Source: Macrostomum lignano
Lineage: Eukaryota
Reading direction: 5' to 3'
NCBI GenBank assembly: GCA_002269645.1
Contig: NIVC01003350.1
Location: 1-64,000 of the forward strand
DNA length: 64,000 bases
Within the stretch, counting starts at the first letter, position 1. Every line of letters begins with the position of its first letter. A program made the translations under genes and the position numbers. Shown here piece by piece: positions 14,535 to 57,409 of this stretch. The notes under the pieces are model-generated. The model was not told the origin of the DNA. It did not search any database and saw only the letters and a list, made by a program, of their open reading frames with translations.

Positions 14535-15281
14535 TAGCTTTTTGCAGCCCATTTGGGCTTACGCGCATTGAATTTAATCCAAGATATGTTTGTCAAAGTA
14601 ATGGAGCTTTTGTCTATGGTAGCAAGGCTGGCACAGCGGCATTTAATTTGGTCCAACAAGCATTAATTTGGTCCATTTAGTTCATTTGCAGCTCAATCCC
14701 AGAATTGTGGACCATATGCTAGGCTGTTGAACGAATGTCATTGGCTTGTGATCAAAGCACTCGACGGAGGTGAACACCCAAAGGACATTGCAAGGTTGCT
14801 GAATGTAAAAGAAAAGGTGGTTTATAGCATCCAGCAGCGCCTTGAAACTCTGCCGGCAGAGATTGCCTGCGAAAGGTTGGCAATCGCCAAGGAAAGTTGC
14901 TCGAGAGCCTCAGGTCCAACTGCTACTCGATGCTGTGGAGACGAACCCTTTGTTGACGTTTCAGAAAATGCAGCAGAAGTTGAGGGAACAGCTCTAGTTG
15001 ATTATCAGATTGCGACTATCAGCAGAGCTCTGGAAAAGCGACTGAAAATTTTTGGTAGAGACGCTGACATTCCAGCGGTGCGCAACAACCTGCAGACGGT
15101 TGAGAGAAGGCAAGAGTTTGTCCAATGGCTCACGAGTGTTTGGACCAAATGGATGCTTGTTGGACCAAATCAAATGCCGCTGCGCCAGCTTTGCTACCAT
15201 AGACAAAAGCTCCGTTACATTGGCAAACGTATCTTGGATTAAATTAAATGCGCGTAAGCCCAAATGGGCTGCAAAATGCTA
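14535..15281 (+). mobile_element. Non-autonomous IS630/Tc1-like DNA transposon with about 140-bp TIRs and TA target duplication
   Basis: 14535-14674 is the reverse complement of about 15141-15281 with few mismatches, and TA flanks both ends. The internal ORF has an HTH-like N-terminus (GEHPKDIARLLNVKEKVVYSI) and IATISRAL..RNNLQTVERRQEFVQWL, truncated before the DDE domain. Confidence 0.75.
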
Positions 15282-17126: not shown

Positions 17127-20100
17127 ATGAGATTGCCATTCTCTGTACGCCGCCGTGGCCGCCTATTGTCAGCTCTGCTGGCTGGCTGCTCCCTGCTCTG
17201 CCTGCTGTCCATCGCACGTGATGGCTCTGCCGGCAGAGCTGCCAGCAGCAGCCCAGATTGCCAGTGTGAAATCGCGGGCAGCCTCGGGGTGGCATCGGCG
17301 GCCGGCTCCGGCGCAAATGCTTCACTGGCTGCTGGGCCCAGCCTGACCCCAGGGCGTCAGCAACTGGACTGCCAGGCCATCCATGTGGCGCTCATTGTTG
17401 GCGGCCAAACCGCCACTCGCTACGCTGTGACGGTGGTCAAGAGTGTCCTGTTTCACCGGTCAACCCCCATCCACCTGCATCTGGTCACTGCAGGCCGAGC
17501 AGAGCGGGTGCTCAAGACTTTGTTTCGAACTTGGAGAATTCCTCACCTCAGAGTGGATTATTATGATACAGCCACTGATCAGGTAGGTCTAATGTACTGT
17601 TTCTTTGCGTAGGTGTGTCCGAGATTGAACCTTACTGTGAATGGTAGGATTCCCCTGTGAATGGTAGGATTCCCCTGTGAATGGTAGGATTCCCCTGTTA
17701 ATGGTAGGATTCCCCTGTTAATGGTAGGATTCCCCTGTGAATGGTAGGATTCCCCTGTGAATGGTAGGATTCCTCTGTGAATGTTAGAATTCCCCTGTGA
17801 ATTCACAGGATTCCCCTGTGAATGCCAGAATTCCCCTGTGAATGCTATAATTTCATTGGGAATGGTAGAATTCCCTTATGAATGTTAGAATTCCCCTGTG
17901 AATGTTAGAATTCCCCTGTGAATGGTAGGATTCCCCTGTTAATGGTAGGATTCCCCTGTGAATGTTAGAATTTCCCTGTGAATGGTAGGATTCCCCTGTG
18001 AATGTTAGGATTCCCCTGTGAATGTTAGAATTCCCCTGTGAATGGTAGGATTCCCCTGTGAATGTTAGAATTCCCATGTGAATGTTAGAAATCACCATAA
18101 GAGCCTCTTTATAATTTTACTAATACGGTACCTTTTTGCAATTACCAGGATGCCAAAGCAAAAAAGCGGTCCCAATTTTTATATCCGCATTCCTGAACTC
18201 CCCCTGCGGCAGGTGAGCTGGCTGTCCAACACGCACTACTCAGGCGTGTACGGCCTGCTAAAGCTGACGCTGCCCTCCGTGCTGCCCCGGTCTCTCGAGC
18301 GGGTCATTGTGCTGGACACTGACGTGGCGGTGACGGCCGACCCCCTCCAGCTGTGGCAGCTGTTCGGCCAGCTGGCCGAGCGGCCCGGCCTCGCTATCGG
18401 GCTGGCGGACAACCTGTCCGATTGGTACCTGTCTGGCAAGGCCGGGGTCTGGCCAGCTCTGGGGCGCGGCTTCAACACCGGGGTGATGCTCATGCACCTC
18501 GCCAGGCTGCGGGCCTGGGGCTGGGACAGGCACTGGCCTGCCGTGGCCAGGGAGTGCGCGGCCAAGCATGGACCCGCCCAGCTGGCTGACCAGGTGTGGC
18601 GGTGCTTCACCTGATGGGGATTTGGGATATTTTATAGTTGGTGGGGATTTGTAATATTTTTATAGTTGGTGGGGTTTTGGGATATTTTTATAGTTGGTGG
18701 GGTTTTGGGATATTTTAATGTTGGTGGGGTTTTGGGATATTTTTATAGTTGGTGGGGTTCTGGGATATTTTAATGTTGGTGGGGTTTTGGGATATTTTAT
18801 AGTTGGTGGGGTTTTGGGATATTTTTTATGTTGGTGGGGTTTTGGGATATTTTATAGTTGGTGGGGTTTTGGGATATTTTTTATGTTGGTGGGGTTTTGG
18901 GATATTTTATAGTTGGTGGGGTTTTGGGATATTTTATAGTTTCTGAGGATTAGGGATATTTTATAGTTACCGAGGATTAGGGATATTTTAAATCTTTAAT
19001 GTGATAACAGAAAGAGTTGGGATATTTCTTTTATTTAAGATTTTGGCGACTGAATCCCGGAATCCCTCGGCACCAACTCCGCCCGCCCGCAGGACGTCAT
19101 CAACGCCCTGGTGCGGCGGCACCCGGGTCTGCTGTACCGAATCCCCTGCTACTGGAATGTGCAGCTCGGTGACCACACCCAGCCGGAACTGTGCTACCGC
19201 TCCCCCGCCAACCTGCCCAGCGTTCGCATCCTGCACTGGAACTCGCCGCTGAAGGTTTGGGGCGCCCGCAGGCATCGATTCGCGCAGCACTTCCACACGC
19301 TGTACATGACCTACTTGGACTATGATGGCGGCCTGTTGCGCAGGCGGCTGTTCGCCTGTCCGGACGATGGCGCGGAGGACGACCAGGACCAGCTGCTGGC
19401 AGAGGACGCCTCCGGTGCCAACTCGCTCGCCGGCCCGGCTGCCGCTGGCGTCAGCGCCGGGGACGAGTGCTACGAGATGCGGGCGGAGCAGCGGCTGGTC
19501 CGGAGGACGCACCTGTACTACTTGGAGTACAACTACACCGCCCAGGGGCCTCACGATGTCACCCTGGTCAGCCAGCTCAGTCTGGATCGGGTACAGCTGC
19601 TGGAGAGCCTGTCGCGACACTGGGCCGGCCCCATCAGCCTTTGCATCTACGTCACGGATGCTGAGGCCCACCAGTTGGCCACCTTTGTTGAGTCTTCTCA
19701 GGTTTGTGCGATCCCACATCCCTAATCAATGAGATCCCACATCCCTAATCAATGAGATCCCACATCCCTAACCAATGAGATCCCACATCCCTAATCAATG
19801 AGATCCCACATCCCTAATCAATGAGATCCCACATCCCTAACCAATGAGATCCCACATCCCTAACCAATGAGATCTCACATCCCTAACCAATGAGATCCCA
19901 CATCTCTAATCAATGAGACCCCACATCCCTAACCAATGAGATCCCAAATCCCTAATCAATGAGATCCACATCCCTAACCAATGAGATCCCACATCCCTAA
20001 CCAATGAGATCCCACATCCCTAACCAATGAGATCCCACATCCCTAAAAAATGAGATCCCACATACCTAACTAATGAGATCCACATCCCTAACCAATGAGA

Positions 20101-21655
20101 TCTCACATCCCTAACCAATGAGATCCCACATCCCTAACCAATGAGATCCCACATCCCTAACCAATGAGATCCCACATCCCTAACCAATGAGATCTCACAT
20201 CCCTAATCAATGAGATCCACATCCCTAACCAATGAGATCCCACATCCCTAACCAATGAGATCCCACATCCCTAACCAATGAGATCCCACATCCCTAACCA
20301 ATGAGATCTCACATCCCTAACCAATGAGATCTCACATCCCTAACCAATGAGATCCCACATCCCTAACCAATGAGATCCCAAATCCCTAACCAATGAGATC
20401 TCACATCCCTAACCAATGAGATCTCACATCCCTAACCAATGAGATCCCAATCCGCAACCTTTCCAGGTGCTGCGTCACCGCCGCAACATTGCCTACCACC
20501 TGCTGATGAAGGAGGGCCAGTTCTATCCTGTGAACCGGCTCCGCAATGTAGCCATGGAGAACGCCGTGACCGACTTTGTGTTCCTGCTGGACTTCGACTT
20601 CCTGCCCAGTCTGGGGCTCTACGAGCATCTCAGGTCCGAGATTGCCAGATTCTCCGCCCAGCAACGGCAGCAGAGGGTGGCCCTGATTGTGCCCGCATTC
20701 GAGACATTCCAGTACAAGCTGCAATTCCCCGCCAGCAAGGCCGAGTTGCTGAGCCGCCTCAACCTGGGGGAGATTGTTCCCTTCAGGCAGGAGGTTAGTA
20801 GTGCGTGGGCCGATTAGGCAGCCTGTGTCAAATCCTGCCTTATAAAGTATTTTTCGCTACATGTCGGCTATTGTCGGCTAGGTTTTTTATCTGGCGCCAC
20901 TGTTAGTGTCTGGCGCCACTGATATTATCTGGCGCCACTGTTAGTGTCTGGCGCTACTGTTAGTGTTTGGCGCCACTGTTAGTGTCTGGCGCCACTGATA
21001 TTATCTGGCGCCACTGTTAGTGTCTGGCGCCATTGTTAGTGTCTGGCGCCACTGTTAGTATATGACGCCACTGCCTGGCGCCAACTTTTATGTGACGTGT
21101 TGCCCTTGCTGGTTTTTGGTGTCTTTGTTAGCGTCTGGCGCCTATTTGAATTACGAGTATGTCGTGGCCCCAGTCCCAGACCGAGGCCCTGTGCTTAACC
21201 AGTCTTGACTCTCGTGCACCCATTGTGTTCTCTCTCAACCCTACAAGGTGTTCCGGGAGGGCCACCGGGCCACGGACTTCACCCGGTGGAAGTCGGCCAC
21301 CCAGTCGTACCCGGTGACCTGGCAGGCTGACTTCGAGCCCTACGTGGTCATCGGCCGGGACGCCGCCAGGTTTGACACCAGATTCGTGGGGTTCGGCTGG
21401 AACAAGGTGTCCTTCATCATGCAGCTGGACATCCTGGGATTCGCTTTCCGAGTGCTGCCCAATGCCTTCATCGTGCACCTGCCGCACGCGCCGAGTCTGG
21501 ACGTGGCGAGGTTCAGGTTCATACCGGAGTACCGGCACTGCATCAACACGCTGAAGGTGGAGTACATCAAGTACTTGGCTAAGAGGCATGGAGTCCGCGC
21601 GCTCAAGTATTTGTCATTTCGTAGGGACGCGAGTGGGTCTGTGGGATCGTCCTAG
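17127..21655 (+). CDS. LARGE: LARGE-like bifunctional xylosyl- and glucuronyltransferase (GT8 + GT49), about 726 aa
   Basis: Phase-0 exons 17127-17582, 18213-18593, 19093-19701, 20467-20793, 21248-21655. N-terminal TM anchor; VSWLSNTHYSGVYGLLKL, VIVLDTD (DxD), GFNTGVMLM, LADQ|DVIN, PCYWNVQL, YPVNRLRNVA, LDFDFLPS (DxD), FEPYVV, FVGFGWNKVS. Confidence 0.95.
17636..18078. repeat. 20-bp minisatellite (GAATGGTAGGATTCCCCTGT)n in LARGE intron 1
   Basis: Tandem copies in two blocks. Confidence 0.95.
18612..18990. repeat. About 28-bp minisatellite (TTTTATAGTTGGTGGGGTTTTGGGATA)n in LARGE intron 2
   Basis: Tandem copies start just after the donor. Confidence 0.93.
19710..20450. repeat. 23-bp minisatellite (AATGAGATCCCACATCCCTAACC)n filling LARGE intron 3
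   Basis: The array spans nearly the whole intron 19702-20466. Confidence 0.95.
20891..21085. repeat. 19-bp minisatellite (CTGGCGCCACTGTTAGTGT)n in LARGE intron 4
   Basis: About 9-10 tandem copies. Confidence 0.9.
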
Positions 21656-21705
21656 CAGCATTCCCTGGGACTCTTGGGTAGCTGGATCTTGCGTCACTGG
21701 CTGCT

Positions 21706-23700
21706 GAGATGCTGTGTGTCTCACTGAGATGCTGTGTGTCTCACTGAGATTCTGTGTGTCTCACTGAGATGCTGTGTGTCTCACTGAGATGCTGTGTGTC
21801 TCACTGAGATTCTGTGTGTCTCACTGAGATGCTGTATGTCTCACTGAGATGCTGTGTGTCTCACTGAGATGCTATATGTCTCACTGAGATTCTGTGTGTC
21901 TCACTGACATGCTGTGTGTCTCACTGAGATGCTGTGTGTCTCACTGAGATGCTATGTGTCTCACTGAGATGCTGTGTGTCTCACTGAGATGCTGTGTGTC
22001 TCACTGAGATGCTGTGTGTCTCACTGAAATGCTGTGTGTCTCACTGACATGCTATGTGTCTCACTGAGATTCTGTGTGTCTCACTGAGATGCTGTATGTC
22101 TCACTGAGATGCTGTGTGTCTCACTGAGATGCTATGTGTCTCATGCTGTGTGTCTCACTGAGATGCTGTGTGTCTCACTGAGATGCTGTGTGTCTCACTG
22201 AGATGCTGTGTGTCTCACTGAGATGCTGTGTGTCTCACTGAGATGCTGTGTGTCTCACTGAGATGCTGTGTGTCTCACTGAAATGCTGTGTGTCTCACTG
22301 ACATGCTGTGTGTCTCACTGAGATGCTGTGTGTCTCACTGAGATGCTGTGTGTCTCACTGACATGCTGTGTGTCTCACTGAAATGCTGTGTGTCTCACTG
22401 ACATGCTGTGTGTCTCACTGAGATTCTGTGTGTCTCACTGAGATGCTGTATGTCTCACTGAGATGCTGTGTGTCTCACTGAGATGCTATATGTCTCACTG
22501 AGATGCTGTGTGTCTCACTGAGATTCTGTGTGTCTCACTGAGATGCTGTGTGTCTTACTGAGATGCTGTGTGTCTCACTGAGATGTTGTGTGTCTCACTG
22601 AGATGCTGTGTGTCTTACTGAGATGCTGTGTGTCTCACTGAGATGCTGTGTGTCTCACTGAGATGCTGTATGTCTCACTGAGATGCTGTGTGTCTCACTG
22701 AGATGCTGTGTGTCTCACTGAAATGCTGTGTGTCTCACTGACATGCTGTGTGTCTCACTGAGATTCTGTGTGTCTCACTGAGATGCTGTATGTCTCACTG
22801 AGATGCTGTGTGTCTCACTGAGATGCTATATGTCTCACTGAGATGCTGTGTGTCTCACTGAGATTCTGTGTGTCTCACTGAGATGCTGTGTGTCTTACTG
22901 AGATGCTGTGTGTCTCACTGAGATGTTGTGTGTCTCACTGAGATGCTGTGTGTCTTACTGAGATGCTGTGTGTCTCACTGAGATGCTGTGTGTCTCACTG
23001 AGATGCTGTATGTCTCACTGAGATGCTGTGTGTCTCACTGAGATGCTGTGTGTCTCACTGAGATGCTGTGTGTCTCACTGAGATGCTGTGTGTCTCACTG
23101 AGATGCTGTGTGTCTCACTGAGATGCTGTGTGTCTTACTGAGATGCTGTGTGTCTCATTGAGATGCTGTGTGTCTTACTGAGATGCTGTGTGTCTCACTG
23201 AGATGCTGTGTGTCTCACTGAGATGCTGTGTGTCTTACTGAGATGCTGTGTGTCTCACTGAGATGTTGTGTGTCTCACTGAGATGCTGTGTGTCTCACTG
23301 AGATGCTGTGTGTCTCACTGAGATGCTGTGTGTCTCACTGAGATGCTGTATGTCTCACTGAGATGCTGTGTGTCTCACTGAGATGCTGTGTGTCTCACTG
23401 AGATGCTGTGTGTCTCACTGAGATGCTGTGTGTTTCACTGAGATGCTGTGTGTCTCACCGAGATGCTGTGTGTCTTACTGAGATGCTGTGTGTCTTACTG
23501 AGATGCTGTGTGTCTCACTGAGATGCTGTGTGTCTTACTGAGATGCTGTGTGTCTCACTGAGATGCTGTGTGTCTCACTGAGATGCTGTGTGTCTCACTG
23601 AGATGCTGTGTGTCTCACTGAGATGCTGTGTGTCTCACTGAGATGCTGTGTGTCTCACTGAGATGCTGTGTGTCTCACTGAGATGCTGTGTGTCACTGAG
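21706..23700. repeat. 20-bp satellite (CTGAGATGCTGTGTGTCTCA)n, about 100 copies, just 3' of the LARGE stop
   Basis: Highly homogeneous. A 340-bp (17-unit) higher-order duplication is visible at 22381 and 22721. Confidence 0.97.
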
Positions 23701-24267: not shown

Positions 24268-26090
24268 ATCGGAGCTGTGAATGTGTTAGACACTCCGTGA
24301 ACTAGCTGCCTGTTAGAGATCGGAGCTGTGAATGTGTTAGACACTCAGTGAACTAGCTGCCTGTTAGAGATCGGAGCTGTGAATGTGTTAGACACTCCGT
24401 GAACTGGCTGCTAGAGATCGGAACTGTGAATGTGTTAGACACTCAGTGTGAACTGTTAGAGATCGGAGCTGTGAATGTGTTAGACACTCAGTGAACTATC
24501 GGCCTGTTAGAGATCGGAGCTGTGAATGTGTTAGACACTCAGTGAACTAGCAGCCTGTTAGAGATCGGAGCTGTGAATGTGTTAGACACTCAGTGAACTA
24601 TCGGCCTGTTAGAGATCGGAGCTGTGAATGTGTTAGACACTCAGTGAACTAGCAGCCTGTTAGAGATCGGAGCTGTGAATGTGTTAGACACTCAGTGAAC
24701 TAGCGGCCTGTTAGAGATCGGAGCTGTGAATGTGTTAGACACTCAGTGAACTAGCAGTCTGTTAGAGATCGGAGCTGTGAATGTGTTAGACACTCAGTGA
24801 ACTTGTGGCCTGTTAGAGATCGGACCTGTGAATGTGTTAGACACTCAGTGAACTAGCAGCCTGTTAGAGATCGGAGCTGTGAATGTGTTAGACACTCAGT
24901 GAACTAGCTGCCTGTTAGAGATCGGAGCTGTGAATGTGTTAGACACTCCGTGAACTGGCTGCTAGAGATCGGAACTGTGAATGTGTTAGACACTCAGTGT
25001 GAACTGTTAGAGATCGGAGCTGTGAATGTGTTAGACACTCAGTGAACTATCGGCCTGTTAGAGATCGGAGCTGTGAATGTGTTAGACACTCAGTGAACTA
25101 GCAGCCTGTTAGAGATCGGAGCTGTGAATGTGTTAGACACTCAGTGAACTAGCAGCCTGTTAGAGATCGGAGCTGTGAATGTGTTAGACACTCAGTGAAC
25201 TTGTGGCCTGTTAGAGATCGGAGCTGTGAATGTGTTAGACACTCAGTGAACTAGCAGCCTGTTAGAGATCGGAGCTGTGAATGTGTTAGACACTCAGTGA
25301 ACTAGCAGCCTGTTAGAGATCGGACCTGTGAATGTGTTAGACACTCAGTGAACTAGCAGCCTGTTAGAGATCGGAGCTGTGAATGTGTTAGACACTCAGT
25401 GAACTTGTGGCCTGTTAGAGATCGGAGCTGTGAATGTGTTAGACACTCAGTGAACTAGCAGCCTGTTAGAGATCGGAGCTGTGAATGTGTTAGACACTCA
25501 GTGAACTAGCAGCCTGTTAGAGATCGGAGCTGTGAATGTGTTAGACACTCAGTGAACTAGCAGCCTGTTAGAGATCGGAGCTGTGAATGTGTTAGACACT
25601 CAGTGAACTTGTGGCCTGTTAGAGATCGGAGCTGTGAATGTGTTAGACACTCAGTGAACTTGTGGCCTGTTAGAGATCGGAGCTGTGAATGTGTTAGACA
25701 CTTAGTGAACTAGCGGCCTGTTAGAGATCGGACCTGTGAATGTGTTAGACACTCAGTGAACTAGCAGCCTGTTAGAGATCGGAGCTGTGAATGTGTTAGA
25801 CACTCAGTGAACTAGCGGCCTGTTAGAGATCGGAGCTGTGAATGTGTTAGACACTCAGTGAACTAGCGGCCTGTTAGAGATCGGAGCTGTGAATGTGTTA
25901 GACACTCAGTGAACTAGCGGCCTGTTAGAGATCGGACCTGTGAATGTGTTAGACACTCAGTGAACTAGCGGCCTGTTAGAGATCGGAGCTGTGAATGTGT
26001 TAGACACTCAGTGAACTAGCAGCCTGTTAGAGATCGGACCTGTGAATGTGTTAGACACTCAGTGAACTAGCGGCCTGTTAGAGATCGGGG
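24268..26090. repeat. 51-bp minisatellite, about 36 copies, with a short variable cassette
   Basis: Unit GGAGCTGTGAATGTGTTAGACACTCAGTGAA-[CTAGCAGC/CTAGCGGC/CTTGTGGC/CTATCGGC]-CTGTTAGAGATC. Confidence 0.95.
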
Positions 26091-26585
26091 CCGCAAGTTT
26101 TAACCGAGTTCAATGACAGTTTGCTGCTAATTTTAGCAAGCGTGCCTAATTAAATATCTTATTATTTGAGTCTACTAAACTGAATGAGAACCAAGATAAA
26201 AGGTACTCATTGTGCTGGTGTGGGTACTCGTTCTCAGTTGGAATTAGTTTGTTCTCAGGTAAATTTATTACAGCTGCTGTGTGCAAGGTAGAAAACTAGA
26301 TTTAGCATTTTGTCTCGGAGACAAAGGGCTTGTCTGGGGCCTGGCAGGACTCCCACTGCTAACACTGCATCACTGCCAAGGCTAAATGAAAGCAGAGCAT
26401 TTCCCAGACTCACACTGTTGATGGCGCAGTACTCGTATTCGTGTGCAATGAAACTTATTTTCTCGCGAAATTAATTTGATAAATTAAACCGAACAGTAAG
26501 AGGCTCGAGGGCTTCTTCTCAAGCCGTCTCTCACGTGTTTCCGACCTTGGCAAAGGCAATGTGCGGAGCGGATCGGGCGTATATC

Positions 26586-26591
26586 TATAAA
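26586..26591 (+). promoter_or_regulatory. TATA box of the small secreted peptide gene
   Basis: TATAAA lies 67 bp upstream of the ATG at 26653. Confidence 0.6.
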
Positions 26592-26652
26592 TAAGCTGGC
26601 GTGAACAGCTCGAGTGTTGGAGATCGCAACCAGCTGCACTACACGAGTCACA

Positions 26653-26889
26653 ATGAAGCTCCGGTTTTGTCTCGCAATGCTGACTGCCTCGGCTTTGCTG
26701 CTGCTGGCGCTGCTGCCGGCGGGCGCCAACGGCGAGGCCGAGCGACCGGACGATGATGAGGCCGACGGGCCGCTGGCCGACCTGGAGGAGCCGAGCAGCT
26801 CGGAGCTCGAGGAGGAGCTCGCCGCCCAGCAGAAATGGTTCGTCCGCTGGCGCAGGAGGAGGTGGAGGTTTCGCTTCTTCCGCGGCTGA
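26653..26889 (+). CDS. 78-aa prepro-peptide: signal peptide, acidic pro-region and cationic Arg/Trp/Phe-rich C-terminal peptide ending in Gly (antimicrobial peptide candidate)
   Basis: MKLRFCLAMLTASALLLLALLPAGANG / EAERPDDDEADGPLADLEEPSSSELEEELAAQQK / WFVRWRRRRWRFRFFR-G*. GC-rich codon usage like the neighbouring genes, with a TATA box upstream and AATAAA downstream. Confidence 0.8.
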   Translation: MKLRFCLAMLTASALLLLALLPAGANGEAERPDDDEADGPLADLEEPSSSELEEELAAQQKWFVRWRRRRWRFRFFRG

Positions 26890-26968
26890 AGGTTGTCGAA
26901 TCGATAGACTATTGCTTCTGTATGAAACTCCCCGCTGCGTTTACAGCTGCTTCTTCATGCTGCCATTA

Positions 26969-26974
26969 AATAAA
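26969..26974 (+). terminator. Polyadenylation signal AATAAA
   Basis: 80 bp downstream of the stop codon at 26889. Confidence 0.55.
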
Positions 26975-27070
26975 ACTTTTTATATGAAGCCCTCGACAGT
27001 ATCTTCTCGACTTTCACGGCATTTCTTTTAGTCTCTTGTAATAACTTTCGATCAATCATCGCCGATTGAA

Positions 27071-27330
27071 GGGGCTGCAGCCCAGTGGTTGGAGCGTCGG
27101 ACTCGCGACTGAAAGGTCGGGAGTTCGATTCTCGACCTATTCGGAACAATTTGTGTCCTTAAACAAGACACTTAACTCTGCATTGCTTCAGTCCACGCAG
27201 CTGTAAAATGGGTGCCAGCATTAGCTGGGGTAATTGAGGGTGTGTGTGGCGACCCCCCAGTCCTTGGACCGAACAGCCGTACGCAGCCTTCAGATGCGGC
27301 ACGCAATAGCTGCGGCTGAGCTGTCGGTTG
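27071..27330 (+). mobile_element. tRNA-derived CORE-type (MIR-like) SINE
   Basis: A-box AGCCCAGTGG and B-box GAGTTCGATTC are followed by TTGTGTCCTTAAACAAGACACTTAACTCTGCATTGCTTCAGTCCACGCAGCTGTAAAATGGG, which follows the CORE consensus (..GCAAG.CACTTAAC....CTCAG.....CTGTAAAATGGG). Confidence 0.75.
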
Positions 27331-28996: not shown

Positions 28997-30311
28997 TCAA
29001 TTATATTCTGTAAATGTACGCAGCACTGAGCCCAGCAACGGAGTCAGTAGGAGCAGTAGCAGTAGCCATTGGTCAGAGCCATATTGCTTGAACAGCAAAT
29101 GCAAATTCAAATCAAACACGGAATAAGCGGCGCACTTACTGATACAGCAGTTCTGACAAACCAGCCAACTTATTAAAAAATATCAAGAATTATGAAATCT
29201 TACCTTAGCTCTACCTGATAGCCACATCATCTTGGGAATTTCTGAAGCGAAATGAAACCACTAAGAGCGCTCACCCATCAGCTGGAAGAAGCGAATCTCG
29301 CAGATGGTCAGGACCACTCCTGTCAGGGTCTGAACCCGCAGCACCCTGCCGCTGAGACCGCAGCTCACATTGAAGACGGACTCGGGAGTCTCTGTGGAGT
29401 AGCTGGCGCACTGAACTCCATCCATCAGCAGCTGGAAGTTCGCCAGCCTCTCCGGGCAGCAGTCGGCTCGATTCCACAGGGTGACGAAGTCGACTCGAGC
29501 TGGGGAGCCGAGCTCGGCCTGCCACCAGGCTGCCGTGTCTGAGCTGTTGGTAGCTGAGCAGCTGTCAGAGTTCCAGTACTGCGCTGTGCTGCCGTCGATG
29601 GCCCTGTCGCAGCTGGTGAAGTGAAAGGTGGAACTCTGATTGCAGGAGACAGGCGTCAGCAGCCTCACGGGAGCCTGGGTCATCGGCTGCATCCTGAAAT
29701 ATGAGAAATTTGTGTTTTTAGCTAGTACTAGCAAGCAGCGCCCTCCCCCCCCTGCAACAAAGAATTGAATATAAGCTTATGAACAAACTACATCTCAGCA
29801 ACCCCCCCCCGAAAGCTTTGACTTCTCAACAATTTCTCAAAAGAATCTTTTGCTGGACATGACGCTTCTTTTCGACATGACGCTTTTATGCTTGACATGG
29901 TGCTTCATTTATGTTTGACATGATGTTTCATTTATGTTTGACATGATGTTTCATCTATGTTTGACATGATGTTTCATCTATGTTTGACATGATGTTTCAT
30001 CTATGTTTGACATGATGTTTCATCTATGTTTGACATGATGTTTCATCTATGTTTGACATGATGTTTCATCTATGTTTGACATGATGTTTCATCTATGTTT
30101 GACATGATGTTTTATCTATGTTTGACATAACGCATTTTCGAGATGACGCTTTTTATGGAGTTTATGTGCATCCTGAGGGCTCTGTGAAAACGAGGATGCT
30201 TGATATTCCACCATCGACGCACGGCTACAACTCAGCAAGCAACTCTGGCCCGCACTCCTTCGGAACTCACCAAACAGCCGCGAATAATAGGGCTATCAAC
30301 ATTGAATTCAT
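28997..30311 (-). CDS. F-type lectin (fucolectin/FTP domain) gene 1, with signal peptide and hydrophobic, possibly GPI-type C-terminus
   Basis: Exons 30311-30271 (MNSMLIALLFAAVW), 29693-29275 ([33 protein letters not shown]), a putative 11-nt micro-exon 29214-29204, and 29086-28997 (QYGSDQWLLLLLLLTPLLGSVL..*). Phases are consistent. The last two exons are less certain. Confidence 0.85.
29870..30135. repeat. 23-bp minisatellite (ATGTTTGACATGATGTTTCATCT)n in lectin gene 1 intron 1
   Basis: Tandem copies are visible. Confidence 0.93.
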
Positions 30312-36144: not shown

Positions 36145-37469
36145 CTATGGCAGATATACAGAACAAAAACCATCGTAAGTGGGAATAAAAATTTGCGACC
36201 CCAATAAAAATAATGAAGTAAGTAAGAAGGCAGAACGAAATGCTAGTAGCCAAAGCCATAGCCATAGCCATAGCCATAGCCATAGCCATAGCCATAGCCA
36301 TAGCCATAGCCATAGCCATAGCCATAGCCATAGCCATAGCCATAGCCATAGCCATAGCCATAGCCAACATACTCGTACCAGCGCAAATTCAAGTCACACA
36401 CAAAAGAAACCGCATTACAACAGTTATGACAAGCGAATCAAATATATAATGAAAGAATAAAGTACATGCTGACATCTTACCCAAACTCCTACCTGATATC
36501 CACATCTCCTTGAAAGTTTTCGATGCTTGAGAATTTCCGAAGCAAACTGAATCACTGTGAGCTCACCCATCAGCTGGAAGAATCGAATCTCGCAGATGGT
36601 CAGGACCACTCCTGTCAGGGTCTGAACCCGCAGCACTCTGCCGGTGAGACCGCAGCTCACATTGAAGACGGACTCGGGGGTCTCCGTAAAGTAGCTGGCG
36701 CACTGAACTCCGTCCATCAGCAGCTGGAAGTTCGCCAGTCTCTCCGGGCAGCAGTCGGCTCGATTCCATAGTGTGACGAAGTCGACTCGAGCTGGGGAGC
36801 CGAACTCGGCCTGCCACCAGGCTGCCGGGTCTGACCTGTTGGTAGCTGAGCAGCTGTCAGAGTTCCAGTACTGCGCTGTGCTGCCGTCGATGGCCCTGCC
36901 GCAGGGGGCGACAAGCGAATGTTCAGAGCTCTGTTGGCAGGAGTCTGGCATCAGCGGCTGCACAACTGGCTGCGTCATCAGTTGCGGCCTGAAATCGACA
37001 ATTGACAATTGGCTTCTTCTGACTGGCAGGGTTTGCATTTGAGATCTCGGAAACAAAAGGTCACAGATTCGAACCCGCGTCGCTTTGGCCACATGACGTT
37101 TGACGCACAGAATTGCTTTGATGAAGACAAACGGATAACTGAGATAAAAAACAGAGTATGTACATGAAAGATGCAAAATTTGCGCCTGTGCACGAAGGAA
37201 TTGTAAATATGGGTGCTCAGGGGGCAGCCGAATGACGTGCCTAAATAGGAAATAGCCTAACCAGCAGTTGTCTGACTGTCACCAGAAGTTGCAACCTGTA
37301 CCACTTTTTTTAAATTTGTTACTACGTGAATAAACCCCATGAAAAGCGGCCAGAACAATCCTACTAATGCAGATTTTACATCTCAGCAAACACTTGGCAT
37401 GCACAGGTCACACACTTGTGGCACTCACCAAACAGCTGGTAGTATTAAAGCAATCAATGTAAACTTCAT
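36145..37469 (-). CDS. F-type lectin gene 2, with signal peptide; the predicted tail contains an expanded (Trp-Leu)n repeat
   Basis: Exons 37469-37429 ([14 protein letters not shown]) and 36988-36567 (FTP domain, near-identical to gene 1), then a putative 12-nt micro-exon 36492-36481 and a putative last exon 36371-36145. The first two exons are solid; the 3' exons are tentative. Confidence 0.8.
36255..36366. repeat. Hexamer microsatellite (GCCATA)n, about 18 copies
   Basis: Perfect array. Confidence 0.97.
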
Positions 37470-39126: not shown

Positions 39127-40801
39127 CCGTCAGCTGGAAGAATCGAATCTCGCAGATGGTCAGGACCGATCCAGTCCGAGTCTGAACCCCCAGCACTCTG
39201 CCGCTGAGGCCGCAGCTCACATTGAAGACGGACTCGGGAGTCTCTGTGGAGTAGCTGGCGCACTGAACTCCGTCCATCAGCAGCTGGAAGTTCGCCAGCC
39301 TCTCCGGGCAGCAGTCGGCTCGATTCCACAGTGTGACGAAGTCGACTTGAGCTGGGGAGCTGAACTCGGCCTGCCACCAGGCTGCCGGGTCTGAGACGCT
39401 GGAGTGTGAGCAGCTGTCAGAGCTCCAGTACTGCGCTGTGTTGCCGTCGATGGCCCCGTCGCAGCGGATGTTGGCCCGGTATTGAGAGCTCTGCTGGCAG
39501 GACGCGGGGCTCAGTGCGATCGGCTGGACCTCAGCCCGAGCTGTCTGCCTGCCTCAGCCTCAGCCCGAATCGAACCCGCCACTGCCCATAGCAGCAGCCT
39601 GCAACAGTTTGAGCGAGGACTTCCAGTTCCGGTAGATGTACACCCACCGGCCAATCACAATCGTGTAGAAGTTTTCGAGTGCACTGGTCATATACAGTAC
39701 TGCATGTAGGCTCACATGTGAGTTGGTTCACATAAAGTTTGTGAAGCTTATGAAACTTATGAAACACACGAAATCGAATGAAGTTTATAAGTGCACACAT
39801 TGTCGGACATCTTACTACAGTGAATTGCAGGTTGGTTCTCTCATTAGTTGGCGTTACAGCGACTTGCTTATTCATTTCTTAGTTCATCTGCACTTGTTTG
39901 TTTACTCTGTTTTCTCTCCCTCTGTCCGGTTCAGTCTTGTTATCTCTCTCTCCCTCGCTGCCTCTGATTGGCTCCTCAATCTCGCCTCTTTCCTCAGTCG
40001 CGCACTCCACCCCTACTCCCTACTTTTCTCATCTGCTCTTGTCTCCAATTTATTGCCTTATAAATATACCCGTTTGGGCCTGCCTGCGTCCGACTTAACT
40101 TGTTTGTTTTCAAATAAGGTAATTACATGTAATAGCTGCTCTGGTTCCAATGGTAAGAGCTACGTAAGATGCATAAATCGGCCATTATCCAGTGTCCCTT
40201 CAAAATATAAAACTCTCAGTATCGAGTCACTGCACCTCACTGACTCACTCCACCTCTCACTGTTTCACTAAACCTCTCATTTCACTCCACCTCTCACTGT
40301 TTCACTAAACCTCTCATTTCACTCCACCTCTCACTGTTTCACTAAACCCCTCATTTCACTCCACCTCTCACTGTTTCACTAAACCCCTCATTTCACTCCA
40401 CCTCTCACTGTTTCACTAAACCCCTCATTTCACTCCACCTCTCACTGTTTCACTAAACCCCTCATTTCACTCCACCTCTCACTGTTTCACTAAACCCCTC
40501 ATTTCACTCCACCTCTCACTGTTTCACTAAACCCCTCATTTCACTCCACCTCTCACTGACTCACTCCACCTCTCACTGTCCCACTCCAACTCTCACTGAC
40601 TCACTCCACCTCTCACTGTCCCACTCCAAATCTCACTGACTCACTCTACATCTCACAGTTCCACACTACCTCTCACTGTCCCACTCTACCTCTTACTGTC
40701 CCACCACTATAACTCTCGCTTACTCCAATTCCTACAGAAATCAAAACAGCAACCTGAACAGCAGACACTTACCAGCATGCAGTGAATTTTGCAGCAAGCA
40801 T
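39127..40801 (-). CDS. F-type lectin gene 3 (retains the fucose-binding His); apparent 1-nt frameshift after the signal peptide; 3' end unresolved
   Basis: Putative exon 40801-40773 (MLAAKFTACW|gtaagt) and exon 39598-39127: LLLWAVAGSIRAEAEAG, a frame change near 39545, then [41 protein letters not shown]|gtgag. Confidence 0.72.
40245..40700. repeat. 37-bp minisatellite followed by a related 20-bp repeat, in lectin gene 3 intron 1
   Basis: (TGTTTCACTAAACCCCTCATTTCACTCCACCTCTCAC)n followed by (CTCACTCCACCTCTCACTGA)-like units. Confidence 0.9.
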
Positions 40802-41730: not shown

Positions 41731-42897
41731 TCAAGGCTCGGCGAGCATCTCGGCCAGGAAGGAGTCCTCGGGAGTCTGGCCCACCAGCTGGAAGAAGAAC
41801 AAGTGCTCCAGGGTCTTTAGGCCGATGCTGCGCAGAGCCGGCAGCCGTAGCAGTAGCCTGGAGAAGCGGCCGGATTCGTCCGGGTAGGCGTTCCGGCAGT
41901 ACTCCTCCAGAGCCAAGTAGAGCTTGTCGCGCACCTGACCAAGCGGATGAGGTCGACCAAAGCAAAGAATTGATAATGAGTTGGGATAATCGTAAATCAA
42001 CTTATTCTTCCTTATTATTCCTAAGGAGGTCAGACTCAACCCGAGGGGCAGTGGAGCTAGTCCTATATACTAAATGCAATCAGAAAGCTCAGCTCTCATT
42101 TAGCCCGAGGGGGGGGCAGTGGAGCTAGTCCTATATACTAAATGCAATCAGAAAGCTCAGCTCTCATTTAACCCGAGGGGGGGCTATATATGAGGTGCTA
42201 CTATACATCAAACGATGCTCTTTTAATAAGACTGATAATTTAGGGTACACTAGGGGGGGTACTTAGTACCCTGCTCGAGCCACCCATCTTAATGCAGCCA
42301 CCGAAAGCGATAGGCAACTAAACTTGAGCTCCACAGTTAGCCGTGCTGTGATAGGGTAGCATCTCTGAGCTGCGATAGAAAGACAGGGTGCGATTAAAAC
42401 GAATATCACAACACCGAGTAAAAAACAAAGTACATTTTCTAGTTAAATAATAAAAGTGCGAACCCACCTGTTCCACCAGCGGCCTGGCCGTGAGCGACCT
42501 AGCGTCGGAGTTGAACAGCACGATGGCTTTGAGGCAGCCCAGCTCGGTCCGGTCCATCCGCATCTCGCGCATTTTTTGCACCAGCTCCACCAGGATCCTG
42601 TCAAAGATGGCGCCGACTCCGTGCTCTTTGGCCACCTCGCGATGCACGTGGAAACCTGTGGCCAGCAGGATGCCGTTGCTCACCACCGTGCTGCGATAAG
42701 AAAACGACGCAATCAGCAGTTCGTTCCAACTGCTCTTGATCAGCACCACCTGGTCTTCTAGGGGCAGCTCGCAGAAATGCGGCAGCTGCTTGGCCCAGTT
42801 CACCAGCGCCATCAGCTGCTTGTCGGCCGCCTGGCAGATGCGGCTCACCTGGACAGGTGGGGAGACGGCCGGTTAGTAGAAAGACAGACAGGCAGGC

Positions 42898-42933
<36 letters not shown>

Positions 42934-43519
42934 TCACCGGGTTGTCCGTGGCGTCCACATAGGAAGACATGGGCGGCTCCAGCGCCAGCTCGGCATTGAG
43001 AATTTTCTGCACGTCGATGCCGTGCTCGCCATTGGCGGCGCCGGCGCCGGCAGCCGGGGCGCCGACACCAGAGGCGCCTCCGACCGACGCCGGCGTGTTC
43101 GGATCGCCGAAACTCAGACCGCCGGCGCCGCCGCCGCTGCTGGCGGGAGACCCGACGGTGGCGCTGAAACCCGTGGAGGCGGCGGCGCCCCCCGGCACAG
43201 CGGCGGCTGCAGCGGCGGCAGCCTCTTCGCGCTCCTTGGCGCGCTGACGCTCCTCCTGAACGGCCTCGCGCTTCATGCCCATGGCCAGGCACTTCATGTA
43301 GCGGCAGTATTGGCAGCGGTTCCGCTGCCGCTTGTCTATGCAGCAGCGGCGCTCGTCCCGGCAGGTGTACTTCAAATCCTTGCGCACCGTCCGCTTGAAG
43401 AAGCCTTTGCAGCCCTCGCAGGAGTACACCGAGTAGTGCTTGCCGGAGGCGCGGTCGCCGCATATGGCGCACAAATTCTTAGTGAAGGTGGAGCTCACCT
43501 CCAGAGTGCTTGAGAACAT
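41731..43519 (-). CDS. RXR: Retinoid X receptor (NR2B) ortholog
   Basis: Phase-0 exons 43519-42938, 42848-42468, 41934-41731. [55 protein letters not shown]; LBD DNP|[53 protein letters not shown]. An additional 5' exon is possible. Confidence 0.95.
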
Positions 43520-45591: not shown

Positions 45592-48500
45592 GGATAGATA
45601 GATAGATAGACAGATAGATAGATAGATAGATAGATAGATGGATAGATAGATACATACATAGATAGATAGATACATAGATAGATGGATGGATAGATAGATA
45701 AATATTAGGGTGATCCAAAAGTTTCCAGAATTTTTTAGAATCCAACTTTTAGTTAATTTTTGTCTATGGAAAAGCTTAAAAGCAGCAACCATCTACTATG
45801 CTGTTGGCCAGCCTTATCATCACTCTTTAGCTTAACATTGCTCAGTTTCCCAGACCCTGCCTACATAAGCCAGCAAACGCATCCAATGGAACTGCCAAGA
45901 ACTGAATGGCGAGCAATTCTGCTCAACCACTTTCATGCGGGACGCAACGCAGCAGAGGCACATCGCGAGTTGTTGCAGCTGATGGGCCCACATGCACCCT
46001 CCAAGTCGTCGGTGTACGAGTGGTTCTCTCGCTTTGCTGAGGAGAACTATGAGCTGAAGGACAAGCCGAGGTCAGGCCGACCCCCTGCTGCTGATGGCGA
46101 TGCCGTTCTCCAAGCCCTTGAGGACAATCCAGACTACAGCGTGCGCAAGCTGTCAGCCGCTACTCGGGTGTTCTATGGCACGGTCCGGCGGAGCCTGCAT
46201 GCTGCGGACAAGGTGCCGAAGGAGCCAACTCTGGTGCCCCATGAGCTGACGCCTCAGCAGCTGAGAGCCAGGGTGGATGTGGCAACTTCGAATCTTCGCC
46301 AGGCCGGTTCGCCAAACTTTCTCAAGTCGATAATCGCTCAAGACGAGAAGTGGGTCTGCTATGAGAACCCAAGCACATCAGCCGTCTGGGTCGATGCTTA
46401 GAAGAACCACCCAGCCAGCTGCCAAATGCGGAACCGCCACTGCGCAAGGAGCTGCTCTCTTTCTGGTTCTGCTCGTCTGGCCCTGTTTTCTGGGAGGTCA
46501 TCCCGCATGGCATGGCTGTGAACGCGGAGGTGATCTGCAGCGAACTGGAGCAGGTCACCCGTTTGCTGCGATCCGTGTGCCCGGGACACCGCGACAAAGT
46601 GCTCCTCTTCGACAATGCGCGGCCTCACAAAGCAAGACTCACCCAGGCCAAGCTGGCAAGCCTGGGCTTCAGTGTTTTGCCCCACCCACCATATTCGCCA
46701 GACCTCTCGCCATGCGACTACCATGTGTTCAGGTCTCTCCAGAGCTTTTGTGATGGACAGCGGTTCGCCAACAAGCAACATGTGGAGCAGGCAGTGCAGA
46801 AATGGATTGATTCAAAGCCTGCGAGCTTCTGGAGGGAGGGGATTGAGGCATTGCCAGCAAGATGGGAGAGGGTCAGGGCCTTGAATGGCAACTACATCAC
46901 ATCGCTGTAAACTGTTTGTTCTTGACACTATTTGTTATAGTTTTAAATTGTTCAAATTCCGGAAACTTTTGGCTCACCCTAATAGATGGTTAGATAGATA
47001 GACAGATAGAGGATAGATAATGGATAGATAGATAGATGGATAAATAGATAGACAGATAGATAGATAGACAGAACTCAAAATCTCACCTATTACTAGTAGA
47101 CTGACTAACAGCGTCCTTGACAACAGCCTCAGCCGCTTCGTTGCTTAGCACATCCCACAGACCGTCGGTTGCCATGACAACAAAATCGTCGGCGCCCATG
47201 CAGTCGCGCAGCGGCACAACCTGCGGCACGCAGCTCAGGAACGGCTTCACTGCGATACTGCTGTCGGACACGAGCAGGTCGTGATCGCCGAACCCCCTGG
47301 CAACGCCAATGGTTGCTAGGAGACGGGACTGGAGATTATTTAAAATTAAATTAAAAGAGAAAACGTTTCAACGGTTCTGCTTTTAATTAAGGTTTCAGTT
47401 TGTTTAAGTTGGGTTTAGGTTGAGCTCTAGGTTGGGCTTGGGGTTTAGGTTTTCAGTTTAGGTTAGGGTTTGAGCTGAGGTCTAGGTTAGGGTTTGGGGT
47501 TGGGGTTTAGGTAAGTAAGTTTTTTGGGTTTAGGTCTTGGGGTTTAGTTTGAGGTTTGGGTTTAGGTTGTAGGCAGAGACCAGAGAAGTCAGTGCCTTCA
47601 AACAATTTAGGCCTGTTTCCCGCAAGCTTGAAGCAGAGAAGCCAAGAAAATGCTGGGTAAAAAGCAAGGCCGGTGCATTCGGTACATTCACAGGGAAGAC
47701 TTAAATTCAAGACAGAACTGCTACATCAAGAATTGCACTAGTGATCGATACATTTGGGGCTGCAGTTCGCATATAATTGTAATCAATTTTGCAATTCTCC
47801 TGAGGCCAATCAAGTGCAAATTAGCAGCTATAGTGGACATGCATAACAAACTTCTTCTTCTCTTCAATAAGGGACGGAACTGCACTAGATGGGCTGGAAC
47901 TGGCACTAGATGGGGCGGAACTGGCACTAGATGGGCTGGAACTGGCACTAGATGGGCTGGAACTGGCACTAGATGGGGCGGAACTGGCACTAGATGGGGC
48001 GGAACTGGCACTAGATGGGGCAGAACTGGCACTAGATGGGCTGGAACTGGCACTAGATGGGGCGGAACTGGCACTAGATGGGCTGGAACTGGCACTAGAT
48101 GGGCTGGAACTGGCACTAGATGGGCTGGAACTGGCACTAGATGGGCCGGAACTGGCACTAGATGGGCTGGAACTGGCACTAGATGGGCTGGAACTGGCAC
48201 TAGATGGGCTGGAACTGGCACTAGATGGGCTGGAACTGGCACTAGATGGGCCGGAACTGGCACTAGATGGGCTGGAACTGGCACTAGATGGGGCGGAACT
48301 GGCACTAGATGGGCTGGAACTGGCACTAGATGGGCTGGAACTGGCACTAGATGGGCTGGAACTGGCACTAGATGGGCTGGAACTGGCACTAGATGGGCTG
48401 GAACTGGCACTAGATGGGCCGGAACTGGCACTAGATGGGCTGGAACTGGCACTAGATGGGCTGGAACTGGCACTAGATGGGCTGGAACTGGCACTAGATG

Positions 48501-55955: not shown

Positions 55956-56552
55956 AGTTGGAGTTGCAGATGGGAAAGCGATAAGGCTGAGTCCAGATTA
56001 GCTAATTAGGCGCTAATTATCATGAACTCGCGCGCTCTCTCGGTGCATGCATTAGAAAGCGAAAAACAGGCGTGTAAAACAAGTTGAAATCTGGGTTTCA
56101 GATAATTATTAAACAACCCAAGTTGCGCAACTTTAACTTGTTACCTTTGAACAAGAAAATCATTAAAGACTAATTGTTCAAATGTGATGATAATGATTAG
56201 AAACTGACAAGGTGCCTGCAGAGATTTGACCGCAATGCTTTTTTTCTGCATTGCCTCTCCCCAATGCTTAGTAAGTCTTTTTTGCTTTTTTCCTACAGCG
56301 CATTTGATAGCTGGAATCTGTCTGCATTGCCCCCCCCCAAAATATGCATTTGATATGCAGTTACTATCAAAACGTTTGATTGGGTAAATCTCTTTATTAA
56401 TAAGACTTACTAAGCATTGGGGAGGCAATGCAGAAAGACTTTGCCACGTGGCAAAATGCACTGTATAGGAAAAAAGCGTTGCGGGCAAATCTTAGCAGGA
56501 AAATCACAATGGGAAAATCTCCTGCGGGCAATTTGTCTGCAGGCATTTCTCG

Positions 56553-56697
56553 TGCTCCCCTGTGTGTGCTTGTGTACACAACTGCATAAGTATCTATGTA
56601 CTTATGTGCCTGCTCTGGGGAGTTAGCAGGATAGGTAGCAATGCCTCTTGCTGGTTTTGTGACAATGTTACTTAAAGTACACCAGGGTGAACACCAC
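56553..56697 (+). mobile_element. SINE family A copy 3 (3' body only), CpG-depleted
   Basis: Collinear with 28060-28195 and with the reverse complement of 7335-7480; all CpGs are lost. Confidence 0.8.
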
Positions 56698-57409
56698 ATT
56701 GCAGACCATGCCGCATGTACAATATGCCAGAAAGAAAAAGCATTGTATTAGAGTGTACACCAAGTCACAAAATAAAACAAGCATATATGCATATGCATAC
56801 TCAATAAACAAATTAAATAACACTAAAAATCATTTTATTTATGAAATAAATTAAAGCATCAAATTATTTGAGAAGAATAAATTACAAAATATATCATAAT
56901 GTATCATTCCTATTTATATTCTTTTAACCAATTTTAAGAAACTTTAATTCTTTCTTAATTATTGAATATGTATATATATATAATATATATATATTACTGT
57001 TTTGATGGCTTACATTGAATAAAAATTTCATATTTATTTGCATAACAAAATATGCACAACTTTTTTATAAAGCTTGTATATGCCAAAAACAGCTTAATAG
57101 ATTGGCTGCTACCATTGCACAGAAGCAAATGAATCATGGTCTGGTCTAATTCCTGCACAATAATGCCTTATCCCCAAACTACCAAGGTGACTTACAAAAA
57201 GTTACTGGACCTTGGCTGGAAACTAATGCCTCATCCATTGTATTCCCACAACCTAGTGCATAATGACTAACTACCATTGTTCTTGGTAGTTGTTTCCTAA
57301 TTTCCTAAAATGTTTTTTTCTATAGAACTAATATTGTATATACTAACTATATTGTATATAGTTGTATAATCTATACCTATAATATGAGTTGACTTTACTT
57401 ATACTCCAG

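Follow-up and report, generated by a model that had tools for sequence, protein, structure and literature searches.

The stretch of DNA analysed here, referred to as the window, comprises bases 1-64000 of contig NIVC01003350.1 in Mlig_3_7 (GCA_002269645.1), a genome assembly of the free-living flatworm Macrostomum lignano, and our subject is a small gene on its forward strand. Window positions 26653-26889 (+) hold an ATG-to-TGA open reading frame (ORF) of 78 codons, and the prepropeptide of 78 amino acids (aa) that it specifies, read directly, is MKLRFCLAMLTASALLLLALLPAGANGEAERPDDDEADGPLADLEEPSSSELEEELAAQQKWFVRWRRRRWRFRFFRG. From the N- to the C-terminus this precursor consists of MKLRFCLAMLTASALLLLALLPAGANG, EAERPDDDEADGPLADLEEPSSSELEEELAAQQ, a single K, WFVRWRRRRWRFRFFR and a G that adjoins the stop. 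We propose, tentatively and with somewhat less than even confidence, that it is a lineage-restricted M. lignano gene for a small secreted and processed cationic peptide of the host-defence type, a proposal made by analogy with known precursors.

The gene carries the signals of a complete and compact unit (Table 1). The initial annotation of this DNA had described such a unit, with a TATA box, an ATG and an AATAAA around a single exon, and these positions were confirmed to the base. The start codon has an A at -3 and is the first ATG downstream of the probable transcript start, there being no upstream ATG in the deduced 5' untranslated region (UTR). The coding part is free of introns, since the range of the gene called by NCBI equals the length of the coding sequence (CDS; 237 nt). 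The mRNA is almost certainly short (~380 nt), beginning ~27 nt past the TATA box and presenting one 78-codon ORF from its first AUG.

It had been assumed at the outset that an ORF as short as this one would have escaped annotation, which proved wrong. The exact 78-aa protein is present in NCBI, in NCBI nr and in UniRef, and an exact-sequence look-up places it on NIVC01003350.1 and on NIVC01003697.1 of GCA_002269645.1. On the contig that carries the third copy, NIVC01003909.1, a 91-aa 5'-partial product is annotated, beginning with 'VLEIATSCTTRVTMKL...' ('VLEIATS...'); in all, the gene is annotated three times in the deposited genome, on near-identical contigs. For the GenBank annotation, a genome-guided RNA-seq transcriptome, Mlig_RNA_3_7_DV1.v1.coregenes, was the sole input; its ORFs were predicted with TransDecoder, and novel transcripts that did not reach 0.5 reads per kilobase per million mapped reads (RPKM) were dropped (PMC5730564). 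Because RNA-seq transcripts are the only source of this annotation, a transcript was presumably assembled at the peptide locus. Transcription, the absence of which had been named as a reason to abandon the gene, is thus supported indirectly, by the inclusion of the protein in an RNA-seq-only annotation.

The 5'-partial product also bears on where that transcript starts. It begins with Val and not Met, at a residue corresponding to window position 26614, which points to a 5'-partial CDS reaching the end of its transcript model. An in-frame TGA lies at 26602-26604, and the three sense codons that follow it are outside the 91-aa product, so the 5' end of the model would fall at 26612-26614, that is, 26-28 nt past the start of the TATA box. 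This spacing is canonical and, as it was not an input to the annotation, it is independent support for a complete unit. The ORF was not found in RNA-seq-derived (Logan) assemblies, a result that is uninformative, as a control exon from the neighbouring glycosyltransferase gene was likewise without a match at the M. lignano level from any source (best 54% identity). We conclude that the gene is real and transcript-supported.

The arrangement of the precursor is, moreover, not that of a chance ORF. The coding sequence forms a sharp GC island (68% GC, whereas the 300 bp flanking it on each side have 41-49%), and its GC content at codon positions 1, 2 and 3 is 68%, 49% and 86%, respectively; the value at the third position (GC3) equals the 83-86% of exon-like ORFs taken from within the adjacent gene for a LARGE-like glycosyltransferase. 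In its six frames, the window contains 145 ORFs of at least 50 aa that begin with ATG, and the 137 of these that do not exceed 200 aa were screened. Only the ORF described here has at least seven Lys or Arg among its last 18 residues, and it is consequently also the sole one in which such a tail is preceded by an acidic middle and by a hydrophobic N-terminus resembling a signal.

Searches for relatives returned the gene itself. Neither a word-indexed search of 5.8 billion proteins (E<=10) nor an exhaustive phmmer search of 1.84 billion representative proteins (E<=0.001) recovered anything other than the query; Pfam offered no family for the precursor at E<=10, the sequences of the PDB contained no match to it, a full-text literature search with peptide fragments gave nothing relevant, and tblastn of the precursor within the window found only the gene. 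It therefore appears to be an orphan that belongs to no described family, as the initial annotation had suspected for the mature sequence after failing to recognise it. Paralogues with a conserved pro-region and a variable tail, which had been suggested as something to look for, were absent among the proteins of these databases, in which the annotated M. lignano protein itself is included; the only copies are three that are ~99% identical and derive from polyploidy. Indeed, M. lignano is a neopolyploid (PMC10733133), and three copies of this degree of identity are what such a genome would be expected to hold.

In a three-way alignment of these copies there are 0 variable columns over 26425-26904, against ~9-13 in most adjacent 250-bp bins. 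The invariant block takes in the 5' UTR and the CDS, together with 228 bp of promoter before them and 15 bp past the stop, and the 3' UTR differs among the copies by several substitutions and a small indel; further invariant blocks exist elsewhere, for example at ~29.1-29.6 kb. The block is suggestive of constraint on promoter and CDS, short of proof, as gene conversion would look alike. With zero CDS substitutions among the copies, the ratio of nonsynonymous to synonymous substitution rates (dN/dS) is not computable.

The nucleotide sequence behind the charged residues raises the first of the other explanations that we have considered. GAGGAG occurs at 26785 and 26809-26817, where it encodes Glu runs, and the Arg run is encoded by AGGAGGAGG at 26854-26862, four Arg codons being AGG; the Glu and Arg runs are the same GGA-type trinucleotide repeat in two phases (GAG for Glu, AGG for Arg), and this shared repeat hints at an origin by repeat expansion. 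Together with the minisatellite and tRNA-like surroundings and the lack of homologues, the two-phase repeat fits a young, lineage-restricted gene. It could be taken further, to a young and possibly de novo transcribed ORF of little or no function, whose charged runs would be by-products of two-phase GGA-type repeats in a minisatellite-rich region. Such an ORF would explain why protein searches found no homologue and why GAGGAG/AGGAGG runs underlie both the Glu runs and the Arg run; its position, flanked by large minisatellite arrays on one side and a tRNA-like element on the other, would be in keeping, and copies that carry no CDS substitutions offer no dN/dS test against it. However, the contrast between 86% GC at the third codon position and 49% at the second is a strong coding-type periodicity and agrees with that of the exon-like ORFs in the adjacent gene. 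Furthermore, a well-formed signal peptide, a well-spaced TATA box, a start at the first AUG in a favourable context and a signal for polyadenylation would not be expected of it, nor would a promoter and CDS that are invariant among copies whose 3' UTR and flanks vary, nor an ending exactly at Gly-stop. We therefore regard an ORF of little or no function as unlikely.

The precursor has the anatomy of a secreted protein. It is as good as certain that it carries a typical cleavable signal peptide, with an n-region MKLR (+2), an uncharged h-region of 17 residues and a c-region PAGANG. The likeliest cleavage follows Gly27 (Ala at -3, Gly at -1), with alternatives after residues 25 and 29; under this simple -3/-1 rule, the signal peptide that had been proposed is present with all its regions and its cleavage site. 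Next comes a propiece of 33 aa with 9 Glu and 5 Asp, a net charge of -13 and an isoelectric point (pI) of ~4.05. The tail of 16 residues contains 8 Arg, 3 Trp, 4 Phe, 1 Val and 0 Cys, so that 15/16 of its residues are Arg, Trp or Phe, and its net charge is +8; the only Cys of the precursor sits in the signal peptide. The residue counts first reported (14 Asp/Glu in the pro-region, a single Lys, 8 Arg, 3 Trp, 4 Phe and no Cys in the tail, and Gly-stop at the end) were all correct. The secreted pro-form, 51 aa long, is thus a diblock: an acidic block of -13, K, an Arg/Trp/Phe block of +8, and Gly78. A single-sequence AlphaFold2 model (mean predicted local distance difference test score, pLDDT, 64.6) has a helix at residues 3-20 and a mostly disordered propiece; a further helix over residues 49-76 (pLDDT 60-77) is too weak and was given little weight.

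Table 1. Features of the peptide gene, in window coordinates.
Feature	Position	Strand	Remarks
Invariant block of 480 bp (promoter, 5' UTR, CDS)	26425..26904	+	Three-way copy alignment
TATA box TATAAATA	26586..26593	+	Read directly; 26-28 nt 5' of the probable transcript start; same in 3/3 genomic copies
Deduced 5' UTR	26612..26652	+	Transcript start probably at ~26612-26614
CDS including stop, single coding exon	26653..26889	+	Gene called by NCBI is exactly 237 nt
Signal peptide MKLRFCLAMLTASALLLLALLPAGANG, residues 1-27	26653..26733	+	Simple -3/-1 rule
Acidic propiece EAERPDDDEADGPLADLEEPSSSELEEELAAQQ, residues 28-60	26734..26832	+	14 Asp/Glu, 1 Arg
Lys61, monobasic processing site proposed in the initial annotation	26833..26835	+	Read directly
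Cationic aromatic tail WFVRWRRRRWRFRFFR, residues 62-77	26836..26883	+	Charge +8
C-terminal Gly78, potential amide donor, adjoins the stop codon	26884..26886	+	Read directly
Stop codon TGA	26887-26889	+	
Overlapping polyadenylation signals ATTAAA (26965) and AATAAA (26969-26974), ATTAAATAAA	26965..26974	+	76-85 nt past the stop; same in 3/3 copies

How such a product could serve in host defence may be drawn by analogy with the precursors of alpha-defensins, melittin, dermaseptins/temporins and arminins. The acidic block would mask and neutralise the cationic block during synthesis and granule storage, and a protease would then separate the two. The terminal Gly would be turned into an Arg-amide, Gly78 being the presumed substrate of peptidylglycine alpha-amidating monooxygenase. 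The freed Arg/Trp/Phe peptide would bind anionic microbial membranes, with Arg providing electrostatics and hydrogen bonding and Trp and Phe inserting at the membrane interface; acting in an extended, non-helical mode, like indolicidin, tritrpticin and the synthetic (RW)n peptides, it would permeabilise the membrane or cross it. By this analogy, an antimicrobial function of the candidate peptide is plausible.

The composition of the tail (15/16 Arg/Trp/Phe), its charge of +8 and the C-terminal Gly suggest, as a resemblance of class, a peptide of this kind, and no competing assignment emerged from Pfam, from the PDB, from the 1.84 billion proteins or from a literature search for FFR-amide peptides. 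In addition, a survey of the whole phylum concluded that flatworms are without the traditional lophotrochozoan families of antimicrobial peptides (AMPs), and lineage-specific ones are thought to serve in their place (PMC10414684). In Hydra, AMPs that are restricted to one taxon and combine an anionic N-terminus with a cationic C-terminus are established (PMC6369191, PMC11767717).

Several observations weigh against a host-defence peptide, the first two of them concerning its release. (i) The lone Lys61 does not appear to be a canonical processing site: the residues that lead up to it are E-L-A-A-Q-Q-K, with no basic residue at P4, P6 or P8, the junction reads Gln-Gln-Lys|Trp, and under the convertase rules a monobasic site that lacks a basic residue at P4, P6 or P8 is not canonical. 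(ii) RWRRRR|W (residues 65-70, then Trp71) fits the R-X-[K/R]-R consensus of furin and the prohormone convertases, so that the internal RRRR would likely be a convertase or furin target in the secretory pathway. (iii) The pro-form as a whole retains a net charge of -4. The charge-neutralising role that had been claimed for the pro-piece stands in so far as an acidic block of -13 does precede a tail of +8, but the neutralisation is only approximate. (iv) The hydrophobic moment of the tail at 100 degrees is 0.06, below that of 98% of shuffles, and its maximum lies near 150 degrees. This rules out the amphipathic helix as a model of the tail, which, having almost no helical amphipathicity, would need to work in the manner of the extended Trp/Arg-rich peptides. 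(v) Among database proteins there is no multigene family and there are no hypervariable paralogues, unlike at most AMP loci. (vi) The habitat is seawater, and salt weakens AMP action that is purely electrostatic. (vii) Many orphan secreted peptides of Macrostomum are products of the reproductive glands. (viii) The strings WFVRW and RFRFFRG are absent from the portion of the supplementary text consulted of an AMP screen carried out on this same proteome (PMC10414684).

The first two of these points leave the mature product uncertain. The 16-mer that was said to be released after the single Lys has both that Lys and a tail of 16 residues in place, but its exact release was assumed, at a non-canonical Lys and with RRRR inside the product. 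The mature form may be the 16-mer amide (monoisotopic mass 2511.415 Da), or, if the precursor is cut after RRRR, WRFRFFR-amide (1112.614 Da) and WFVRW.

It is these shorter products that would be made if the gene encoded a neuropeptide or peptide-hormone precursor, with the acidic stretch as an ordinary spacer: a prohormone convertase would cut after RRRR (67-70), the basic residues would be removed by a carboxypeptidase, Gly78 would serve the amidating enzyme, and WRFRFFR-amide, perhaps together with WFVRW, would act on a G-protein-coupled receptor. The layout of signal peptide, acidic spacer, multibasic site and C-terminal Gly is the standard one of amidated precursors, with RWRRRR|W in agreement with R-X-[K/R]-R, and the tail is aromatic and basic like the flatworm FMRFamide-like peptides; neuropeptides can, besides, be antimicrobial themselves (PMC5614986). 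Measured against the features used for precursors of the flatworm flp/npf/npp types, the gene has the signal peptide and the Gly-stop, its sole canonical multibasic site (RRRR, 67-70) lies inside the 16-mer, and Lys61 is non-canonical. Nevertheless, the precursor resembles no known neuropeptide precursor, from flatworms or elsewhere (phmmer, Pfam), no family of FFR-amide neuropeptides appears in the literature searched, and the C-terminus would be an Arg-amide where the flatworm FMRFamide-like peptides have a Phe-amide. Furthermore, an orphan is at odds with the conservation that neuropeptide genes usually show among flatworms, and a run of four Arg is unusual for a processing site. On balance we think a neuropeptide quite improbable.

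The clean succession of an acidic and then a basic and aromatic block also suits a gland secretion with no antimicrobial role, in which the pro-form or its halves would work as a charge-block polyampholyte with a physical or reproductive function. Granule condensing or packaging, the attach/release chemistry of the duo-gland system, or a component of seminal fluid or of the cement glands are the roles we have in mind. Acidic blocks combined with basic and aromatic ones drive complex coacervation and cation-pi adhesion, and genes for gland-specific products are typically of this sort, orphan, short, TATA-driven and secretory. For the detachment of M. lignano, a 'small negatively charged molecule' of unidentified nature has been proposed as the trigger, and release is blocked by cationic peptides (PMC6410801). 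Against this, the vesicles of the releasing gland are reported to be low in protein density and polysaccharide-positive (PMC6410801), and the Gly-stop and the extreme Arg/Trp content are more like those of bioactive peptides than of structural material. A gland product of this sort is, to our mind, rather unlikely.

Two bolder statements can be built on the same observations. The first is that we are dealing with a recent, possibly de novo, Macrostomum gene that arose from two-phase GGA-type repeats and whose product is a charge-block pair rather than a classical AMP, which we hold to be very improbable; in its duo-gland version, the polyanionic propiece of 33 aa, once set free, would be the factor for release that has been described as 'small negatively charged', and a cation-pi surface binder would be provided by the Arg/Trp/Phe block. 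The second and tamer one keeps the host-defence reading: the gene may represent the first gene-encoded family of linear Arg/Trp antimicrobial peptides in free-living flatworms.

The genomic surroundings of the gene are rich in repeats. Two minisatellites, one with a 20-bp unit in ~100 copies (21704-23694) and one with a 51-bp unit in ~36 copies (24268-26088), precede the gene, which lies 500 bp downstream. In the whole 64 kb, Tandem Repeats Finder (TRF) lists 27 rows with a score of at least 200 and periods of 4-82 bp, some rows describing the same array. A 21-bp unit repeated ~157 times at 47876-51166 is open on both strands (ORFs 47650-50889 on the plus strand and 47721-50825 on the minus strand), with 1079 aa of GTGTRWA heptads on the former and SSASSSP-type repeats on the latter; it may encode a repetitive protein or be only a minisatellite free of stops. 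Downstream of the gene, at a distance of 180 bp, a sequence at 27066-27140 (extending to ~27300) resembles a tRNA and has motifs like an A box and a B box (GGGGCTGCAGCCCAGTGGTT...GGGAGTTCGATTCTCGACC). It occurs once in the window, is found in 3/3 genomic copies with few substitutions, and may be the remnant of a short interspersed nuclear element (SINE); ARAGORN tRNA and Rfam scans of the window reported nothing, leaving it uncalled. From 56001 to 64000 the GC content is 31-35%, against 40-58% in the rest of the window.

The nearest annotated neighbour, 5 kb upstream and on the same strand, encodes a LARGE-like glycosyltransferase of 449 aa (Pfam Glyco_transf_49; 18568-21655, +), copies of which are annotated at 212 and 510 aa on other contigs. 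Downstream, long ORFs at 29261-29734 (-) and 36424-37176 (-) contain galactose-binding (discoidin) domains of the F5/8 type C or NedA-like type (E values 3e-12 and 2e-10). The deposited annotation, which extends to 36889 at least, has no gene at these positions, and the ORFs may be unannotated lectin-like exons or belong to a repeat-associated family. Further ORFs correspond to a TLC-domain exon-like sequence (39723-40271, +), a C4 zinc finger of the nuclear-receptor type (42845-43519, -; E value 6e-30) and the helix-turn-helix (HTH) domain of the Mos1 transposase (45760-46401, +; E value 1e-11); an ORF at 14727-15242 (+) has generic HTH matches below threshold only and is at most a possible transposase remnant.

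To our knowledge, no classical gene-encoded AMP family has been characterised in free-living flatworms. M. lignano is genetically tractable, with RNA interference (RNAi), transgenesis and a transparent body, and it is mainly in this tractability for testing that the value of the gene lies. If validated, a promoter-defined, single-exon effector would provide a handle on epithelial and gut immunity and on microbiome control in flatworms. The peptide also closely resembles the minimal antimicrobial and cell-penetrating (RW)n motifs obtained by design, and a natural, amidated version with a masking propiece, if true, would be of interest to peptide chemists. Should the product prove to be a neuropeptide, a reproductive product or an adhesive one, it would still come from a compact orphan gene in which acidic and basic blocks derive from one type of repeat. 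If it is active, it would probably be another AMP of an already known type; we rate it a good but ordinary AMP-like candidate.

The closest parallels in architecture are the arminins. Like the M. lignano precursor, these are taxon-restricted and consist of a signal peptide followed by an N-terminal part that is anionic and by a C-terminal active fragment that is highly cationic and contains Arg and Trp (PMC6369191, PMC11767717), and they have been reported only in Hydra (PMC6369191). The arminin-like architecture claimed in the initial annotation is accordingly present, as a signal/anionic (-13)/cationic (+8) layout, but the resemblance is one of architecture only: phmmer detects no sequence similarity between the arminins and the M. 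lignano precursor. They differ in other respects too, as the C-terminal peptides of the arminins are ~31 aa long and described as alpha-helical, whereas the M. lignano tail has 16 aa and no helical amphipathicity, and as the arminins form a multigene family while the M. lignano gene has only copies derived from polyploidy.

In the mature peptide the likeness is to indolicidin, tritrpticin and the (RW)n peptides, which are equally very short and free of Cys and consist mostly of Arg and aromatic residues. The C-terminus of indolicidin is amidated, and Trp/Arg-rich peptides act on membranes in an extended, non-helical form. With 16 aa, 3 Trp, 4 Phe, 8 Arg, a charge of +8 and no Cys, the M. lignano tail has the composition of the Trp/Arg-rich AMP class, a match of composition and not of homology, and the kinship with indolicidin and tritrpticin that had been noticed from its Arg and Trp content holds in that sense. 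Nevertheless, the tail contains no Pro, its Arg fraction of 50% is above theirs, and Phe is as frequent in it as Trp. Indolicidin and tritrpticin, moreover, come from a cathelin-domain proprotein, whereas Pfam finds no cathelin domain in the M. lignano precursor; the pro-domain of the cathelicidins is cathelin-like and has four conserved Cys.

Prepromelittin and the preprodermaseptins and temporins share the size of ~70-80 aa, the signal, the acidic propiece and a cationic peptide of short length, with Gly as amide donor at the C-terminus or close to it. The propiece of melittin is composed of X-Pro and X-Ala dipeptides and is removed stepwise by a dipeptidyl peptidase. In contrast, only 4/17 of the M. 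lignano dipeptides (residues 28-61) have Ala or Pro in second place. The amphibian precursors use a Lys-Arg site where the M. lignano precursor has a lone Lys, and there is no homology between them, although the M. lignano precursor does have the Gly donor. The alpha-defensin precursors, too, place a signal and an anionic propiece ahead of a cationic peptide.

A screen for AMP-like sequences has been run on the same proteome (Mlig_3_7, BOX15 tags) by Irvine et al. (2023), who selected small signal-peptide proteins with predicted cleaved cationic peptides, termed fAMP-LPs, in a pipeline that dropped peptides without relatives in a second assembly (PMC10414684). More than 16,000 in-silico AMP-like candidates are thereby already listed for helminths, and most of those from flatworms are Cys-rich, whereas the M. 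lignano peptide is linear (PMC10414684). Taken together, these similarities and differences suggest that, although it is a member of none of these precursor families, the M. lignano gene is built like the precursors of the arminin, melittin and temporin types.

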